Source: Pavona decussata (taxonomy: Eukaryota). From it: a stretch of 64,000 nucleotides of DNA. The translations under genes were made by a program, and so were the position numbers. The notes beneath the pieces are model-generated. The model had not been told where the DNA came from. It did not search any database and saw nothing but the letters and a program-made list of their open reading frames with translations. Shown here in pieces: positions 30,571 through 48,500 of the stretch (position 1 is its first letter; each line of letters opens with the position of its first letter). The DNA lies in NCBI GenBank assembly GCA_977016875.1, contig CDRNST010000226.1, positions 744,001-808,000 of the forward strand, read 5' to 3'.

Positions 30571-33500
30571 TTATTTGTACTGAACTGTGGTCCAACCATC
30601 CGGATCAGATTGCTCCGCGGGGGGTCGCTCCCGACCACGGCGGGAAGCAGACCAGGATTTCCCTGCAATACAAAGCAAAAGAGGAACCTGGAATAAGATG
30701 CCGAAATTAAGTAACATTACGGAGAACCTAGTGCCGGACACCTTTCCGAAACAGGGAGACAGTCGTTATCTAAGCAAAGAAAGAAATCTACATTCGCCCT
30801 GAAAGCTAGGGCAAAGGATGTCCATTAAATCAAGTATTTAACTGCATTCAACGTAGAAAGAACGCACTTCTAATACAGATTGGAGTCGAGGTTGTATATG
30901 ACAACAACGTTGATTGAATGAATGGATCTTGGGACGCGTATCTGGTATACCCACAGACTTTGCAGGGGCTGATGACATCATCACCAACTTGACAAAGGAG
31001 AGAGAGCTTGGTGACATCAAACGCACTCCCCAGTCTTTGATTATTACTAGTAAATAGACCCTATATTAAAAAAAATTCAGTTTTTGTAACAGTCCCCAAA
31101 CACTGGTTTCGCTACGAATGTAGAACAGTACACTATACTTTTTATCCCACCCTCCACCCTCCCCTCCCGCCTTGCTTTTCTGTAATGGCGACGGCTACGT
31201 GTGCCGTACGCTTTAAGCCAAACAACAAACCTTCAGTGCGTGCAGGTGGGGGTTCCCGCCTCCACTGGTCACGGCCTGGCTCGTCCCCTCCTTTTCTCCA
31301 TCCATCACGCTCACGATCACCGCCACGATCGTCTGCTCGCTCACTCCTCCAGCCAGAGCGATCACGGTCATCGCGGTAACGATCGTCACGATCACGCTCA
31401 CCTCTAAAGCGATCACCATCGCGGTCTCCACGGTAACGATCCTCGCGTTCCCGATCTCCGCGATCACGATCTCCACCGCGCCACCCTTCTCCTGGCGGAC
31501 GGTCACGCTCATCCCGGTCACGCCTTCCCCAACCACTTGGCCTGTCACGGTCGTCACGCCCACGATCATCACGACCACTTCCCCGCCAAGAGCTTTGTGG
31601 AGGACGGTCACGTTCGTCACGATCACGATCACGATCACGGTCACGCCATGCGCCTTGCGGAGGACGATCTCGGTCGTCTCTCCTCCAACCACCACCACCA
31701 CGATCATCCATTCTTCCACGATCATCCATTCTTCTATCATCCATCCGTCCACGATCGTCCATTCTACGATCATCCATTCTACGATCGTCCATTCTGCGAT
31801 CATCCATTCTTCCACGGTCGTCCATTTGTCCACGATCATCCATTCTACCACGGTCATCCATTCTTCCACGATCATCCATTCTACCACGATCATCCATTCT
31901 ACCACGATCACCCAGTCTTCCACGATCATCCATTCTACCACGCTCCTCCATTCTGCCACGGTCCATATCTTAAGAAACCAAAGAAATACGAAATTTAGCA
32001 CCTGGTCATGGATAATGAAAGCGCTGTTTTGTTTTGTTTTTTTGTTGTTGTTGTTTTGTTTATGTGTTGTCTCACTGTCAAAGTGTTTTTAAAGGAAAAA
32101 TTCAGAATATATTTTGAGAATCGTAACCCCAAAAGCTCTTCGCTTACCGCGTCTTGGGGGTCCATCTCTGTCACCAGTCCTCCTCCAGGAAAATCCCTCG
32201 TCACGAGGCCCTTCTCTGTCACGCTCATCTCGTCTCCAGGCTCCACCTGTGGAATAAAGTTGAGTAAACGTTTTGTATTTGACGGCTTTTTTTTTTTTTG
32301 CCTTAATTGAGGGCAGCCCTGCCGACTCCTATCGACAATTTGTTCTGTGCAAATACCTTGATATAACCTATTCTAAGCGTAATAGTTGCAGTGTGGTCTT
32401 TCAATCGAGAGTCGAAGAACCAAAACAGTAATCCATATGACCAATTAAACCATGAAAACAACACAACAGAACAATCAGCACGTCAAACCGCCAAAGCGTG
32501 TGGTCCTCTTGTATTCATTGATTACCGTTATAATTATTTCAATTTACCACTTGGGACACTTGCTTCATTTAAGATTTTGGAGTTGAAGTAAGGACGCTTA
32601 TAAGGGACTAGTTGGTGGGGAAGAAGGAGGGGGGAGGGGGTGTGATGAGAGCGAGAAAGCAGTCTGTGGGCATCATCTTAAAGCGTAGCCTCCCACGCAG
32701 TCGTTTTTAGGGGACTCGTATTGCCTCCTCCCCACAAACGCCTGCTTACCCAAGCGCCACATTCCTTTCCCATTGTTTTACTCCCCAAGCACCCTAGCCA
32801 ATCACCATCGAGGCATTGTCCAATGATATCGAATCAAATTCCTGGTTACAACGGCCGCTTCCGTTTCCCGCGAGCTTTGTACAGTCCCTGGTACAGTCTT
32901 GAGAGACGCGGGAGTTAAGTTAGAATGTACTTATATTTTTTCACTTCTGGAATGGCTGGTTATGGCTGAAACGTCAAAACAAATATCGAGTGTGAATAAA
33001 AGCGCTTCTTGTGCGACGTTTTGACACCGTTAACTGTTGGAAGAGTCAAAATCTTCGGGAAAGTGTAGTCGATCTTTCCCGCCTGATCGAGTTGACAGTG
33101 GATGAAGATATCACCTCTTACGCTACTCTACGTTACTCTGGAGCAGATTTGTTCGTTTGGACGAAGTGCTTCGAGAGACTAACTCGATTCAAGGGAAGAT
33201 CTGCAGTAGTTATCAGTCCATTGAAGACTATTAAACGGAAAGTTAAACGACAAAGAGCCGATCAACTTGTGGTCCTTGTGGAAAATGTCAGCTAATGTCG
33301 TACATTCTCCCGAACAAATTGCAATAATAAAGCGAGTTTCTACTGCAAAATCTTTAAAGTTTACCGACATAAAAACAATCGGGTAATATTTCGGTTTCCT
33401 CCACACCGACAAGGTCGACAAGATTGAAGGCAAAGCATTAAATATTAAAGCGACTTTGCGTAACCATTCGGCAAATTGACGAAAATATCGCTATTTCCCG

Positions 33501-39500: not shown

Positions 39501-42500
39501 TTAATGGAAGGAATGGACACAGCTGTAGGTGAACAACCTATTAGCTTCACTTTACCATCAAGACACTAAAATATTACATTATTTTACAGTAATATTACTT
39601 TCTTGGACTGCTTCAGGCTACGTTACACATACCAATTAATTGGGCTTGCCCAAGTCTGATGTTACTGATTTGAAGCTCAAAAATTTTAGTGACTGCCCGG
39701 CAAACATAATGTTTACTGAGTTGTCTATATTTCAATATTAGAGCAGTGTTCACTTGAGTGTCAGAAAACTAAAACCAAAAGTAATCACTCTAGCAAATCA
39801 ATACAAACGTAACTACAACCAGCCAACCAGTCTGTGAAGCAAAACACTAAAACAGCGGAACTCGCTTTACGAACTCCGCCTTCATACAGAGGCTTGTTAT
39901 TATGAACAGTTTTCTTGGTCCCACTCCACACATTTTCCTTAAAATCAACCTGCTTAATAAGGACACTCCATAATACAGACACTTTGTCTGGTCCCGATGG
40001 TGTCCGTAATAACAGGGTTTGACTCTAAAAGAAATTGGTGTTTAATGCAGAAAAAGAATGAGTACATGAAAGGGGAGGGGAGGTGGGGTAGTAATGTGGT
40101 GATAGGGGAAAAAAAGAAATACGAGGGATCTATCCAAGTTATCATCTTTTTAGAACAACACCCGAAAGCTGGATCTGGATTGCATGCTGGACTACACCCG
40201 CTGTATGAACTGTATGTTGTGGTTGCTCAACAGAGGTATAATACTTATTTATATGGTGCAGTAAGGTAGTTATTTTAGTACTGTAGCACTGTAAATTCAT
40301 TTTAGCGTTTTAACTAGGCATGATATTACATGCAAATAGTGTCTCCATTTAGTGGTTCTTTTACTGCTATGTCAGGCTGACAATTATGTTATCATAATCA
40401 TCATCATCATCATCATCACCATTAGAAAACAGATGAGTGACCCATGAAGACAGTAGCAAAATACTTGCCCTTTTAACATGGAGAGACTCCAAATATTCTT
40501 TGCGTGCTTCAATCACAGCCTTCCTTTCCAGCATCTGTCTGTGCTCCTTCTTGGAGGAACGCAGGTAGTTTTGAACAATCCTCTGCTGTTCTTCGTTACA
40601 TTTTTGCTGTAAATACCAAGAGAAAAAAAAACCCAAAACAAACAATGTTCATCAGAGAGAAAAATAAAATCAGAGGATAATGATAACTGGATGAAACTGC
40701 ATCAGACTATGGGTGGTTACGAATTCTCCTCAACGTATGGTGGATGCTAGGACAGTGAAGTAGGAGAGAATCATCATTTGCAGCATAAATACATAGTGTC
40801 ATTAGTTTAAAATTATTGCTACTGGAACCAAGAGAAATAGTGTCAGAGTTTGAAATGGTCAGATGGAGTTAAAACATCACAGTTCTAGTAGACATCTGGG
40901 CAAATGCCAGTCCCGTTTTTTGGTTATCAAGTTACTAAGAGATCTTTCTATCATAATGGTTCATTGTATAGATTTTAATAAGATGAAATGATTGTAAAGT
41001 TTTCATTCCCTTATTATTACATTATATTAGCTTTTAGGATTTGCATATTAGTATTTTAGAATAAACCAAGCATTATTTTATATATTCACAGTTTTAAGGG
41101 TAGTATATGTTCACCACACCAGTGCACTTTAGATGTTTGTAAATCATCCCTTGAGATCATCATAACTGGAGCAAGTGTCCAAGAAACCTCAGTATTATCA
41201 ATTCTGACCAAGCATCAACATTATTTACCTTGATGGTCTCGGGGGTAATCTTAGTAATTGCCTTGTGCAATGCTGTAGACATCAGTGTCAGCTGATTTCT
41301 GAGCCGCTCAGATGGCATTGACTGTAACAAAACAGAGAAGAAAACAATGAAGACTGTGCAACTGCTTCTTGCATAGCATTCAAACCGACAAATGCAAACT
41401 TGCTGTTGATCAGCCTATGGGTGGTTGAATCTTATCCTCATCGCAATGGTGGATGCTTGGACAAGACTGTGGTGTCAATGTTGTCATCATTTACAGCAAG
41501 CCAACAACTTATTGTTTTCATTTATACACAAAATTCTACTTGTTAGTGGGGTTTACTTACATGTAGCTCAGGTCCCGGTTGTTCAAAAGCGGATAATTTT
41601 ATCCACCTGATAGGTCGCTATGTGGCATATAAATGTGTGCAAGAATTTCCCTTTATTCCTATAGTAAATTTATTTGCATATAGAGTAGAAGGGTTGTCTA
41701 ATTTAGGTATGGGATTGTGTGGAAAACTTGCCAAAAGTGTTGTTTGGAGTACATTTGCACCGCTGGATAGTGACTTATCCACTGGATAAAGTTATCTGCC
41801 CTTTGAACAACTGGAACTTTAAGCGTAGATGGTGATAACACAACTTTATTTATAACACATGGTGGACACATCAGTACAACTCAAAGCACTAAAAAGTATA
41901 GAATTCATGTCCACAATGTTCATGGATTTTAAAGTCTCTAGCTTGTGTAACAAGGCTGTTCAGGTAGTATGGGTAGCTGTAAATCTTTGCAGTTTAGCTG
42001 TAACAGTTGTCAATGCTATTGGTTGGGTGAAAATATCATACACATTTGCCTCTGTCATTTATTTCTTCTGGGGTGAGGCATAGCTGAGTTTGATAAATTT
42101 ATTGATAAATGTGAACATCAACTTGTTGTCTTGTCACGTAGACCTTCTGAAAATGTTAACTGAATACATGTACACGTAATTGTTTAATTATGCACTAGTA
42201 TCTTTTACTGTGTGTTAGTCCAACATGGACAGTAATGAAAAGAAGTAAGGTTGCCACTCATCAGCACAAAAAAAATTTCCCTGATTATTCACTGACCACA
42301 AACCAATTTTCACTGACCACTAAAGACAAATCTTTTGGCAATAAATCCAGGAATGAAGCCTCAGAAATCAACTCCTTTGCAAATAGTTTTTGGAATGACA
42401 TTACTTTTGCCAACTAGGAAACTCTTTCTATCACCCTTGCAGCTAGCCAAAAATAAAATTCCCTGCCCATTCAGACTTTGGGTTGGGATTTAGACATTTC

Positions 42501-45500
42501 CTGACTTGATGCAAAATTCCCTGACTTTTCCCTGACCTTGAAAAATTAGGTTTTACTGAAACCAAACTTTACTGCACACTAGTGGTGAGAATTTCTAAGG
42601 TGACCATACCTGTAGATAAGGACCTTCTGGAACCTCCTCTTTGTGGGCCACATGCAGGTCAAGTCCAAAACTTATTGCCTTTGTTTTGTGGTCAATACGC
42701 ACCTGACAAACAAAAAAATAGGCAGTCTCAGACTGCATGTGTCTACTGCAGTACTGGTATAGAAATGTGATATAAAAGAATTGAAGAAAAGGGAAATAAG
42801 ACTGAAATAAAAACGAAGAGGGAGGAGTGGAAATAGGATAGAGATAAAAAAAAATGGTTGTAAAAATGTTGCACAGAATACTGGTGAGAAGAGATTAAGC
42901 TGGTATCGTTTACCACAAACATTTTGTATGAAGAGAACTGTAACTTTATTCTAACATAAACAATATATTATATAATCTTACAACCTGAACCACAACTTTG
43001 TACTGAAAGCAATGCAGCAAAGTTCTAAACATAAAGTACTGAAAGCAAAGTTCTAATCTGAAATGTAGGCATAAAATGCAACAGAAATTATTAATTAATC
43101 TATACTGAACTTATGAATGGCGTGTTTCCATAGTTTTCGCATAAATTAACTTTTTTCCAGAGCGGTTTAAACTGAATAAAATGCGCAGTAGATAAATAAA
43201 TATCGTTGGCTTCCAAAATTAACTGCATATTAAGTTGGAATGATTAAACAAATGTTTTCTGACGTAAAATAATATGGTTACCTATTAATCATTTGCCGAA
43301 AAACACACGTGAACGCAAAATTCATGGCATGTTGATGAAGACCTTTGGCATGTCAAATTTCATCCGCTTATGCAAATTGTCCTTACGCATTTGTCGCTTC
43401 TCAAACGCATATATGAATTGACAAAGACACAAAAATCAACAAAAAGCTTTCCAAAAAAAACATTTTATTGAAATAAACGATGCATTTGCTATTAGAGGCA
43501 AAAAACTTTCAGTTTTTTTGCGTGCGTGCAAACACGCATGTAAAATTTGAAGATACTCCGTGTTTGTTCAAAGCGATCACTCGCAGTAAATTCGGGCATG
43601 TTTGCCATGAAAATTACAGAAGTTACAGAATTCTGGTTCAAATCATCACTTAAACTATTTGTAAAAAGCAAATCAACATCGGAAAACATCATTTACCGTA
43701 TTGTCGCCATTGTCCTGATCCGCAAATACAATCGCTTCGATCTCAGTCAGTCGAGGATTAGCGTCGGCTTTCGATAGTATTCCATTTGGGATTCCTGTGG
43801 CATTTACACGCTTACACTCTTTCACTCTTTCACTCTTTCACTCTTTCACTCAACCCGATGACATAGTGTCTACGCTTCTCTAGAAGCCGTAGACACAAAA
43901 ATTAGTTTCCTCTGGAGGAACTGAACTTCTTTTATGAGTACAACCAGCAGTACTGCAACTCTTTGAAAGCCAACAACTTTTATTCCCCTCTTCCCCCTCA
44001 GTGCAGCATCTGATAGTGCTTTTAGGGCAATGGGCATTGTTTCTGTTGGTTTGTTTATTGTCCTGTTCTCTTAAGCACCAAACTAACAGTATGAGAGATT
44101 GCGAAACCCAATAAATGTAACAGCTAAATCATGCTGTATGGAAGAAGGATCCCTGTCCAGAATATCCAAGGGCCTCTACTGTGGCCAACTGGACTCTAAA
44201 GAGTACACCACACCACAGTTGACACTTCCTGCAACCCAACTATGAGTCCTCATGCAAACGTACCAGGCATCCATCATCACTCTAATAAGCTAACACTTGA
44301 CAAAGGGGTAGAAGAGGGGGGGGGGGGGGGGGATGATGAAAAACAGACCAAAATTGTGCCAGAAATTATCAAGACTATGTTCAGAAACTCTGATGAACCA
44401 CCATACTAAAACATGCTAGTACACTGAGGAAGTGTTCTGTCCAAGCATGCACCAATGCATACAAATACCACTGTCTACAGGACAAGTACAAGCCACACCT
44501 TGTTGTTAACTTTGTTACATTCCATCAACAGCATCTACAACTAGCTGTCTAAAACCAAAGTCACACTTCAGGTAACAGGACTGTCGCTGAGTTTTGAAAA
44601 GCTGGCTTCAGAATTAAGGTGCCCACCCACGAACTAAAGAAAGTTTCTAATGCCTGTTGTGCGTCATGCAGTTTTCAAACCGAAAGTATGGTACAACTTC
44701 ACTGTAGCTGCCAGCCATTATAGCCGATTTGATCTTAACGTTTTAGTCTGCTAGCAAAATTTCGATGAATACATGTAACCATGTAATCATAATCAATTAA
44801 AGCTACTGAGCAGTACTTTCCTATGGTTAGACTGTTTGTCATGTTGTACAAGAAGGTTCAAACTTTCAAGTATGAGTGAAGGTTCTTGCATGTTTAGTGT
44901 CTTAAAAACAATGCTGCAGGTGATGACGACGACAAAGGGTGAAATTTTGAGGTGTGAAGATGCTCCTAACTTTCGTGTCTGTGAGTAAAATCTTTTAGTT
45001 TACTGCTGGCCCGTGTTATGTTTAGCCACAAGTAAGTTAATTTTAACTGTACCTGCAACTCATTTGCAAGGGCAACATCCACAATTGCTCTCTCTAACTG
45101 GAATTCTGTAGCAAACGGCACTAGGGTCAACAGTCGTGAAAACTCCAGTGTCTGGTACACTTGAGATACCTATAACAAGAAATGCAAGCTTATACACATG
45201 GAGATAACCCTCTGGCAGCCCAATTGGAGTTGCCTGACTGGCAAGTCAGTCCCAAATATTTTGTCAAAATCATCAAAGCCATCAATTTGGCTTTATGCCT
45301 AGTTTACATTGTACAAAATGTTTGCTGAATTTGCCAAATTTGTTGTTGTTTTGGCTGTTCTTACAGTCCTGGAAATTTGATAAATTTCACCAGAATGGCC
45401 AAATGTGTGACATATGTATTCACTAACATTGTCAAATCCATCAACTTGGTTTTTCACCCACTTTACAGTCCATACAACTTGACAAAATTGTGACAAATTA

Positions 45501-48500
45501 GCCACAGAGGCCTTCAATTCTGGACACGGGTGGTCAAATAGTTGGTGAAAATATTACCTAGAATGTAATATGTACATAAAGTTTGAGAAGCTTGCTACTG
45601 CGTACCAAACTACCACGACAGAAGATTGAAAACCTAAAGCATTGGCTCACCTGTTTGAGGAGACGCACAATAGACATCTCTTGCACTGGCTTAATGTACT
45701 GCGATAGCTCCAACTCTTCATTCTTCTGCAAGAACTCCAAGATTGTATTGACCTCAATGCATAGCCGCAGGGGAGCAAACTCTCTCTCCAGGTGCTGATA
45801 CAGATCTTGCAGCTGTGGCATAATATGTTGCTGAACATTCATCTTCAGCTGTGGTTATAAGGCAAACGTAACAATAAGTTGTCAGAACATGTCAAGGTGC
45901 AATGATCTAAAGGTGTAGCAATCCCTAAAAACATGTTTGCAGATTGACAGTTTTGCTACCTACAGTTGACTACCTGACCCTTTGTACATAAACTTTTGCC
46001 AACATCTTAAATAGCAAGGTCTCCTATTCCTGTTTTGCTACATACCAAGTAAGGCACATGAAGGGGATGGTTTTGTATGACTTTCATTTTCAAGGTTGGT
46101 AGTTCATAACATTGCCTACCTTCTTGAGTAGTTCATACAGGTAGGTGAGTTACTGTATCCCACAGAACTGTATTTACTTCAATAAACCTGGGAATTTTAT
46201 TGCAAACTAAAAAACTGAAAAGGTGCATCCATTCAAATGTTCAACAAAGTCAAAAAGGTCTGTTAAGATTTAGAAATTGATTTATCCCTTACATTCCTGA
46301 ATGGATGAGACAAACATGTCCATCCCAATGCTCTGGGAAATTTATTTCTCTTTTGATTGCTGTGAAGAGGCAGTAGACCTGCCCCTTTCAAAAACTCTAT
46401 TTTCACTGGACCCTGATAATCTGCAGCTGCATTACATTTTAGGTTGGGGGCATTGTTCTGTTCTTCCTTCTTTTGCCCTGTCCACCAACCATGTAAGACA
46501 TTGCAAACGGTGCAGGTTGCCCCTGAAGAGGCTGTTTATTTGGGGGGGGGGGGGGGGGGGTTCAAGTAGATATGGTCATCTACCTCTCTCCATACAGGTG
46601 TATATACGAGGGTGTATGTACAAGTAGCAGGAAATGGTTAGGGACACTTAACAAAATGTTAGAGAAATGAAAATGTTAACTCTTCTAGCACAATGACCTC
46701 TTTAGTCCCAGATAAAAACTATGTAAAATGTCATCAGTCAAACAATCATAAAGTCCCAAGAATAAAGACAATGATCACTGAGAAGAAGTACAGTGTATCT
46801 TGATATGAATACTATAAAACAACGTCAATAAACTTCTCTCTTCTAATACTTGAAGTCAACAGTGGAGAGGGTCATCCTAAATACATCATTCAAGTCTAAA
46901 ATCAGTGACAATGGTATTGATTCCACTTTCACGTCATGTCAGTAGCTTCTTACCATGTCATTAATGAGTGATGCTCTAGTGGGAATGTTTTGTAGTCCCA
47001 ATAGGTTGGCTAAACGGCGAGATTTCTCCCTTGCATTTTCATCCAACTCCAGGTGCTTCTCTGTTTCGCTAAGTGATACAGGGATTGGAATAGCAAGAGT
47101 TGCCAACAGCACACGAGACGCCATTCTTGAGAAAAAAACAACAACAACAAAATCAAAGTCATGACTAATGTTTCTTCACTGCTTGGTCATAATCAGGATT
47201 TAAGTCAACTGTAAGTGCATGTGCTTCACCACTCATGTGATATTTTAGTTGTCTATAATAGGAAAATTTTGATTTCGCTAATTATGCCAGGAAACACTCA
47301 TAGGTCCGTTGTAGAATCCCAGACACCTCACACTCACAAAGTTACGTGCAATAACTCTAAACACAAAAATCCTCTCACTTTTGATGTTCCTCTGCAGTCA
47401 TGGTCCGTTTCTGTTCCCTGGACAGAACATAGAGCCGATGAAGAGTACAAGCATGGAATAAGTAATTCTCAGCTTTCCAAAAGACAAGAGCAACTTTCTG
47501 ATAATAGTTGGCCATCACTTGTGGCTTTGGGGGTCTCTTGGAGAGCTGCATGAGTCCATAAACATCTTCCACAGCTTTAAATGCCTCCTGTAGTGAGATA
47601 ATAAAATACAGTATTATGCATTGTAGATTCTGCAGATGCATTGACATAATGCATTATATGTGACAAAGGAGAACAAAAATCAAACTGGTTTGTAACAAAT
47701 TTAACCAGTACAATAGTCAACTCTGTCCAGAATGAACATCACTGGGATCAGTAACAACTGTCCATTTGAGAGAAAAAGCTGTCTTGAAGAGAGTTAAATT
47801 TTAAGCACAGTGACCGAATATCTTATAGCAGGGACTAACTTGAAGTGTCTGTTTTAGAGAAGTGTTTGTCTTATACTAAGAGGTGTCTGTGAAGAAAGAC
47901 TTGACGGTACATCCAACATTATTATTCAATGCATTGTAACACTGCTCAAATGTGGTCATGGTGCAAGGACTATTTGTCAGATATCCGTAGTCAACAGATA
48001 TCCTGCAATACACGTAATTTTGTTTGTCAGGAAGAAATAACAGAATAGAGATCGTCTCCAGCTTTTCTACAGTACAAGTGTGCTTTGTTATCGATCTGTT
48101 AAATAATAAAACCATTATCCTCCTCAATCTTGGGGAATGTCCCCTGGTTTTAGCCAACATGGCCTATGGCCTCGTAAGTATCAAGAGGTATGGCGCGTGA
48201 TTTTGCAGGATAATATTGTTAATTACCATGAACCCACCTGCCAGAGTTCCATGTTGATAGCACTCTCCAACTGAGCCAGCCGAGTTTCCAGGTGTAGCTG
48301 TAGAGTTTCTGGATTGGTTAGGTTCACTGTGTTAGGCTGCCCTTGATGCTTTATGGCATTGTTCAAATGGTTCCTCAACTGATGAATTAAGAACAGATTT
48401 AAGAGCATCCACTGTTAGCAATAAAATAAAGGAAATGGAAATGGCATGCATCAGATGCATGCTTACATAACCTGCAGACATGCAAGGAAGTTTGGGAGAA

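Follow-up and report, generated by a model that had tools for sequence, protein, structure and literature searches.

Two predicted box C/D snoRNAs in introns of the coral eIF3a gene share a guide matching one 18S rRNA uridine

What are the two similar short elements found in consecutive introns of the eIF3a gene of the coral Pavona decussata, and could they direct modification of the same ribosomal RNA (rRNA) nucleotide? The stretch analysed, here called the window, consists of 64,000 nucleotides (nt) and corresponds to positions 744,001-808,000 of contig CDRNST010000226.1 in assembly GCA_977016875.1; coordinates are positions in this window unless a contig is named. A preliminary description had proposed that the two elements, A and B, are paralogous small nucleolar RNAs (snoRNAs) of the box C/D class, each with a terminal stem, a C box, a C'-like box and a D box. 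All of these features were read on the minus strand as claimed, and the span that had been given, 40697-41499, was correct to within one base but ended one base short of the B stem, which reaches 41500. Taken with the evidence below, we consider it quite probable that A and B are paralogous intron-encoded box C/D snoRNAs that are redundant for a single predicted site in 18S rRNA.

Towards its 5' end each unit has a sequence of the form RUGAUGA and towards its 3' end the sequence CUGA, relatives having either AUGAUGA or GUGAUGA, and in both a terminal stem lies directly outside the boxes and joins C to D. Read from 5' to 3', A consists of GCUGCA, two A's, AUGAUGA, a variable stretch of 17 nt and the internal block GUCCUAGCAUCCACCAU, followed by 4 nt, UGAGGA, 8 nt, the guide AACCACCCAUAG, a single U, CUGA and UGCAG(U). 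The boxes, the 12-nt guide and the block GUCC(U/A)AGCAUCCACCAU are common to A and B, while the region 3' of the C box is only about 25% identical between the types that they represent. The stems had been described as different yet still able to pair, and this was the case: one pair is changed on both sides, giving GCUGU/ACAGC in the B type versus GCUGC/GCAGC in the A type, a compensatory replacement of U-A by C-G.

The host gene was identified as eIF3a, on the minus strand, from an exon at 47378-47587 that matches solved eIF3a chains (E = 2e-27), and the exons on either side of A and B also read as eIF3a segments. The intron containing A extends from 40607 to 41228, because spliced contigs from two runs guessed to be RNA, which carry the same organism label as the best holders of the window, join 40606 to 41229 across a GT..AG intron. 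Both units are in the sense orientation. The end of A lies approximately 90 nt upstream of the exon defined by the spliced contigs and 77 nt separate the end of B from the next exon downstream, which begins at 41321 (AG at 41323-41322), so that the consecutive introns and the proximity to the 3' splice site (80-90 nt had been claimed) were both recovered. A distance of approximately 70-90 nt to the 3' splice site is said, after work attributed to Hirose and Steitz in 2001, to be usual or optimal for mammalian intronic box C/D snoRNAs.

The proposed target was examined in the ribosomal DNA (rDNA) unit of the coral itself, in which the rRNAs were placed using Rfam (18S at 460-2259, 5.8S at 2459-2612 and 28S at 2810-6467 in L007). 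The 18S rRNA contains the expected motif CUAUGGGUGGUGGUGCAUGG, with 892 rDNA matches in the assembly. Between the guide and 18S positions 1261-1271 (CUAUGGGUGGU) there are 11 contiguous Watson-Crick pairs, or 12 pairs in B if a G.U at 1260 is counted, and in both units the duplex ends 1 nt from box D. With this spacing, the fifth nt upstream of D pairs with U1264, which is the U directly before GGGUGGUGG in 18S and is the position that had been predicted from the D+5 rule. No comparable match to the guide was found elsewhere in the 18S, 5.8S or 28S rRNA of this coral, and the chance expectation for an exact 11-mer from an 18-nt stretch in a 9-kb rDNA unit is approximately 0.02. From this pairing, A and B are predicted to guide 2'-O-methylation of 18S U1264. 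The rDNA itself is a tandemly repeated unit approximately 8.53 kb long, seen in contig C16 and in many short contigs, and the 892 occurrences of the 20-nt 18S motif are mostly in short contigs of rDNA repeats. The coordinates of A, B and the surrounding eIF3a features are listed in Table 1.

Table 1. Positions of snoRNA candidates A and B, their elements and the flanking eIF3a exons and introns
Feature	Window position	Strand	Details
snoRNA A	40696-40784	-	88-89 nt; order: stem, C box, block, C', guide, D box, stem
A C box AUGAUGA	40771-40777	-	
A conserved internal block GUCCUAGCAUCCACCAU	40737-40753	-	
A C' box UGAGGA	40727-40732	-	
A D guide AACCACCCAUAG	40707-40718	-	11 Watson-Crick pairs with 18S 1261-1271
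A D box CUGA	40702-40705	-	
A terminal stem GCUGCA/UGCAG(U)		-	5-6 bp; outermost pair G.U
snoRNA B	41399-41500	-	102 nt; element order as in A
B C box AUGAUGA	41484-41490	-	
B conserved internal block GUCCAAGCAUCCACCAU	41446-41462	-	
B C' box UGAGGA	41435-41440	-	
B D guide AACCACCCAUAG	41415-41426	-	with the next G, 12 bp with 18S 1260-1271, one G.U
B D box CUGA	41410-41413	-	
B terminal stem CUUGCUGU/ACAGCAAG		-	8 bp
eIF3a exon downstream of A	40465-40606	-	...HVKRA; 3' boundary approximate
eIF3a intron hosting A	40607-41228	-	622 nt, GT..AG; spliced contigs, runs X17 and X19
eIF3a exon between the host introns	41229-41321	-	...PETIK; homology and contig cover
eIF3a intron hosting B	41322-42609	-	about 1288 nt; bounds from exon homology and GT/AG signals only, contig cover at 41321

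Relatives were sought by scanning metagenome contigs with an exact pattern (C box, 40-70 nt, guide, one nt, D box), and 11 contigs were returned; the label coral goes back to the records of those runs in which the window sequence occurs. Copies of the A or B type were present in eight of the 11 (L008-L011, L014-L016 and L018). Those of the B type were found in L008, L009/L015, L014 (two copies) and L016, and those of the A type in L009/L015, L016, L010, L011 and L018. L009 and L015 were identical over both of their copies, and there were ten further distinct copies in total. Because the C box, guide and D box were prescribed by the pattern, the invariance of these elements in most copies is by construction. 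Three copies, the A-type copies of L009/L015 and L016 and the second B-type copy of L014, fell outside the pattern (C box GUGAUGA) and were found as contig neighbours; the guide, spacer and D box are intact in all three. The C' box UGAGGA, which was not part of the pattern, was invariant in 12 of the 12 aligned copies (100% mean pairwise identity). Mean pairwise identity was 87% in the internal block, 66% and 69% in the two short spacers and 40% in the 5' region after the C box (25% between the A and B types).

Conservation was confined to the units. Similarity between the window and four of the contigs ended no more than a few bases from the ends of B (8 bases in L016), and in the longer contigs it resumed only in exons. 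In a related coral (runs X10 and X14), A differed, among the best-supported differences listed, only at 40720, 40735 and 40736, positions close to the guide and the block but not within either. A covariance model (R1) gave scores of 97.5 bits for A and 87 bits for B, and no further member was found when it was used to search the genome, a search that scored only 150 of approximately 337,000 candidates and could therefore have missed weak relatives. One match of 25 bits had no C box and was not counted as a member. The exact guide-plus-D pattern was found in the 602-Mb genome at A, at B and at two places without boxes (in contigs C56 and C76), the latter being close to the number expected by chance.

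Neither unit matched any family when Rfam was searched with the whole window at curated thresholds or with 40300-41900 at E ≤ 10, in keeping with the unannotated status that had been proposed for them. Weak rows for SNORD111, snoU31b and snoR35 were attributed to chance. Those for the C/D families SNORD11B, snoR79, sR11 and sR5 were false, having been produced by an (ATG/ATC)n microsatellite at 40371-40424, in the intron after the QKCNEEQQ exon.

The lack of an Rfam match and of expression evidence speaks for an alternative in which A and B are not snoRNAs but conserved intronic sequences, either involved in the control of eIF3a splicing or repeats, that resemble the boxes by chance. However, the combination of box order and spacing, a compensatory stem change, an exact guide one nt upstream of box D, the distance to the 3' splice site and conservation that does not extend beyond the unit is very unlikely to have arisen by chance, and sequences for which two copies were found in the genome (in the R1 search, within the 150 candidates scored) are not repeats. 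We regard this explanation as very improbable. The preliminary description had inferred that eIF3a is host to a family of cnidarian box C/D snoRNAs not yet annotated, and the target in the coral's own 18S, the lack of an Rfam match and the relatives in eIF3a introns that keep the boxes and guide all agree with it. The comparative evidence is strong that A and B belong to a real coral snoRNA family, as yet unannotated.

Several observations weigh against A and B as guides of U1264. A duplex of 11 bp is rather short by the standards of guide RNAs, and the energy of the guide duplex was no better than that of shuffled guides on the 9-kb rDNA unit with spacers included. With shuffles equal or better, the energy scan is uninformative and the argument therefore rests on the exact pairing beside box D and on conservation; in most of the metagenome copies conservation of the guide was imposed by the search pattern. 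A canonical D' box (with GA) was not found in A or B, where candidates such as CUAG are weakly D'-like, and in this genome the stem of A comprises no more than 5-6 bp. The contigs of the runs guessed to be RNA show spliced messenger RNA (mRNA) only and no direct sign of a stable small RNA, the public runs being available as assembled contigs, which cannot reveal one. The contig obtained from the one library recorded as RNA was unspliced and belonged to a related coral. A methylation map for any cnidarian was not found in the searched literature.

The short stem also raises the possibility that only one copy is functional and that the second is a duplicate in decay, from which stable RNA is no longer processed; A would be the most plausible candidate for this. 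In A the stem is 5-6 bp long and ends in G.U, versus 8 bp in B, and its predicted folding is no better than that of shuffled sequences (z = +0.7), versus z = -2.8 for B. However, A-type copies with intact boxes, guide and stem were found in at least five other distinct contig sequences, in the related coral the changes in A are only outside the guide, block and boxes, and a short stem suffices for box C/D snoRNAs. Decay of one copy seems quite unlikely.

If A and B are functional, they would be transcribed within the eIF3a pre-mRNA, and the terminal stem would bring the C and D boxes together to form a kink-turn. The core proteins 15.5K/Snu13, Nop56, Nop58 and fibrillarin would bind during splicing, and exonucleases would trim the debranched intron to an RNA of approximately 90-100 nt. 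Fibrillarin would then methylate the 2'-OH of U1264, the nucleotide that lies opposite the fifth position of the guide and at the approach to helix 34. No guide is recognisable in the 5' half, which would contribute the block and UGAGGA as a degenerate D'/C' module. Biogenesis of this kind is established for intronic box C/D snoRNAs.

The internal block is far better conserved than the neighbouring 5' region, and a role as a second antisense element was considered, either as a D' guide for U1271 or as an accessory pairing to 18S GGUGGUGCAUG that would aid the D guide. B-type copies invariantly have CAUCCACCAUU, which pairs with 18S 1269-1279 through 3 bp, a mismatch and 7 bp that include two G.U pairs, and a D' box immediately after CCACCAU would place the fifth position on U1271, the U33/snR55 site. 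However, the A-type copies of other corals have CCAACU or CCAACA in place of CCACCAU, which breaks the pairing to 18S, and the variable positions of the block (GUCCUA[A/G]C[A/U]UCCA[A/C]C) retain no complementarity to any rRNA site. All candidate duplexes of the block contain a mismatch together with G.U pairs, and on the rDNA unit the folding of shuffled blocks was just as good. The proposed site overlaps the target of the D guide by 3 nt, and the letters that follow the block (ACGU, GUGU, UGCG or UUGU) are not D'-like. A second antisense role is therefore considered unlikely by us, and the earlier suggestion that the block is an extra or second guide to the adjacent GGUGGUGCAUGG was not upheld, as the A-type copies of other corals change CCACCAU and no clean rRNA target was found.

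A wider comparison of the 5' halves of the 12 copies with 18S, 5.8S, 28S and the spacers revealed no target common to both types that was free of a mismatch and G.U pairs. The best recurring candidates, 28S 879-891 (8 of the 12 copies) and 28S 1071-1081 (7 of the 12), are broken by the variable positions of the block. A possible internal stem formed by the block with C' (CAUC/GAUG in B and CAAC/GUUG in the A-type copies of other corals) looks compensatory but was also rejected, as it overlaps C' and is broken in the A copy of this genome. That two blocks are common to A and B, as had been reported, is true in this genome. The A-type blocks of other corals differ, and the identity of the A and B blocks is therefore not a general property of the family; here it may reflect retention or local conversion. 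The block and UGAGGA most likely represent a degenerate internal D'/C' protein-binding module, an interpretation that leaves the degree of conservation unexplained.

An exact complement of the block was not found elsewhere in the genome outside the two loci. A 22-nt near-copy of the B block region (CUGUCCAAGCAUGCACCAAUGC) is present in inverted orientation in another eIF3a intron (44436-44460, plus strand), and the eIF3a pre-mRNA is therefore complementary to the B block at about 19 of 21 positions. This was one of eight matches in the genome to the block complement with one mismatch, and it is in the same gene. It could be what remains of an inverted copy, it could have arisen by chance (rough p of 0.001-0.01), or it could serve as a pairing site. 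When a wider region around 44436-44460 was aligned with gaps, the result was not above background.

Wherever an exon can be recognised in a contig, the copy falls within an intron of eIF3a, and three different introns are used overall. One copy is located before and one after the SMPSER exon in this genome and in L014, in which both visible copies are of the B type. In L009/L015, B and A are both found between the SMPSER and QKC-EEQQ exons, separated by approximately 620 nt in which no coding exon could be recognised; the span of the pair, 1086-1894 in L015 and 638-1446 in L009, is identical over both units. The same order of B, A and the QKC exon was seen in L016 (1149-2037), with the units approximately 700 nt apart in a contig that ends short of the SMPSER exon. 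In both arrangements, which belong to another coral lineage, B and A are in what looks like a single eIF3a intron, though a non-coding exon that was not recognised may separate them. Two units in one apparent intron would be unusual compared with the rule of one snoRNA per intron in animals.

A variant of the A type, with the block GUCCUAGCUUCCAAC, was found at 77-164 in L010, 1049-1136 in L011 and 1104-1190 in L018, approximately 95-135 nt upstream of a different eIF3a exon. There is no copy in the intron just upstream of the counterpart exon in the window (47175-46942). As the host is always eIF3a and the intron varies, the family appears to stay in this gene but to move or duplicate between its introns, and it provides a clear example of a snoRNA family kept in one host gene in this way. 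The A and B loci merit annotation as snoRNA genes rather than as anonymous conserved intron.

Two further features of the host gene were observed. A high-copy repeat was seen at 41575-41800, inside the intron that contains B. There the contig depth, elsewhere in the tens, climbs into the thousands or hundreds of thousands, and each of the four runs shows many internal joints and loose ends; the repeat is probably a short interspersed element or a miniature inverted-repeat element. The C-terminal eIF3a frame (about 31150-32100, minus strand) includes a long run of DDRGRM-like repeats, similar to repeats of vertebrate eIF3a.

Methylation at the position equivalent to U1264 was examined in published maps. 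Arabidopsis RiboMethSeq data include methylated positions Um1264, Um1266, Um1273 and Gm1275, of which Um1273 and Gm1275 correspond to human 1326 and 1328 and to yeast 1269 and 1271 (PMC8583080). Only one register gives the U, U, U, G spacing in CUAUGGGUGGUGG, and the predicted coral site therefore corresponds to Arabidopsis Um1266. The earlier placement of the site 7 nt upstream of the U33/snR55 site was arithmetically right and fits this register. Um1266 has been assigned to AtsnoR32, which is also the guide of Am1330 (PMC8583080), and the equivalent tomato position is Um1265, while human, yeast and Ostreococcus have no entry for the site (PMC11542601, Table 2). In the Drosophila map (PMC11014333), Um1357 and Gm1359 are listed with no entry 7 nt upstream, and in Dictyostelium, where the pair is Um1264/Gm1266, Um1255 lies 9 rather than 7 nt upstream (PMC8817022).

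The site is absent from the human, yeast, Ostreococcus, Drosophila and Dictyostelium maps and is therefore restricted to plants among the mapped organisms checked. The novelty that the preliminary description had implied holds for animals but not for biology as a whole, as the equivalent of U1264 is known in Arabidopsis and tomato (snoR32); a coral U1264 methylation, which is predicted here, would be new only for animals. No paper on cnidarian snoRNAs or rRNA methylation and no snoRNA catalogue was found in the searched literature, and A and B thus add a snoRNA family to a phylum for which neither a catalogue nor an rRNA methylation map was found. A predicted 18S Um that occurs in plants and not in model animals or yeast bears on the gain and loss of rRNA modifications in early animals.

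Among known guides, SNORD33 (U33), snR55 and Arabidopsis U33 are box C/D RNAs that act on the same 18S segment as A and B. Their site (human Um1326, yeast Um1269 and Arabidopsis Um1273, equivalent to U1271 in this coral) lies 7 nt downstream of U1264, and they differ from A and B in target nucleotide and in guide, with no match as a sequence family. The D guide of A and B selects U1264, and the block reaches U1271 only via a bulged or mismatched duplex that is lost in A-type relatives.

The closest functional parallel is plant snoR32 (AtsnoR32-1 and AtsnoR32-2; Rfam snoZ43, RF00330), a box C/D guide RNA with the same D guide. The snoZ43 consensus guide CACCACCCAUA selects the same 18S uridine as A and B, Arabidopsis Um1266, the U before GGGUGGUGG. 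There are short likenesses in the internal module, namely UGUC-YUA upstream and UGAGGA/UGcCGA downstream. A and B gave no match to snoZ43 at E ≤ 10 over 1.6 kb or at E ≤ 1 over 14 kb (the curated threshold is 43 bits), nor did their coral relatives. Plant snoR32 also guides Am1330 through a D' element, which in our own reading would be the GGUCUCGUUCGU stretch of the snoZ43 consensus; A and B have no such element, and their variable 5' regions showed no complementarity to ACGAACGAGACC, as a D' guide for Arabidopsis A1330 or human A1383 would. Plant snoRNA genes lie in clusters, whereas the coral copies occur singly or in pairs in eIF3a introns.

A further box C/D RNA, type C, was present in L017 and, as identical copies of the unit, in L012 and L013. 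It shares with A and B the D guide (CACCACCCAUAG, one nt, CUGA), the C' box UGAGGA and a similar UGUCUUA element, and it scored 37-40 bits on snoZ43 (E = 5e-6), just below the curated 43. No exon was recognised in the type C contigs, so this RNA is not in eIF3a; nor is it from this coral, in whose genome the type C contig had no DNA match. A second C/D candidate was observed approximately 160 nt downstream of type C, at 1039-1130 in L012 (minus strand) and 1097-1198 in L017 (plus strand). This candidate has a D' guide (GGUCUCGUUCG, one C, CUGA) suited to the adenosine in 18S that corresponds to Arabidopsis A1330 and human Am1383. The two guides that are combined in plant snoR32 are thus split over two neighbouring RNAs in L012 and L017.

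It is conceivable, though rather doubtful, that A and B, type C and plant snoR32/snoZ43 form one ancient family that predates the split between plants and animals. The shared guide is dictated by the shared target, and common descent with the plant family is therefore put forward as a possibility. If it were true, the guide and the methylation would have been kept in corals, and perhaps in other non-bilaterians, and lost toward vertebrates, flies and yeast, which would add another plant-like RNA feature to those of cnidarians. The coral block would then be a remnant of the end of the ancestral D' guide together with its D' box.

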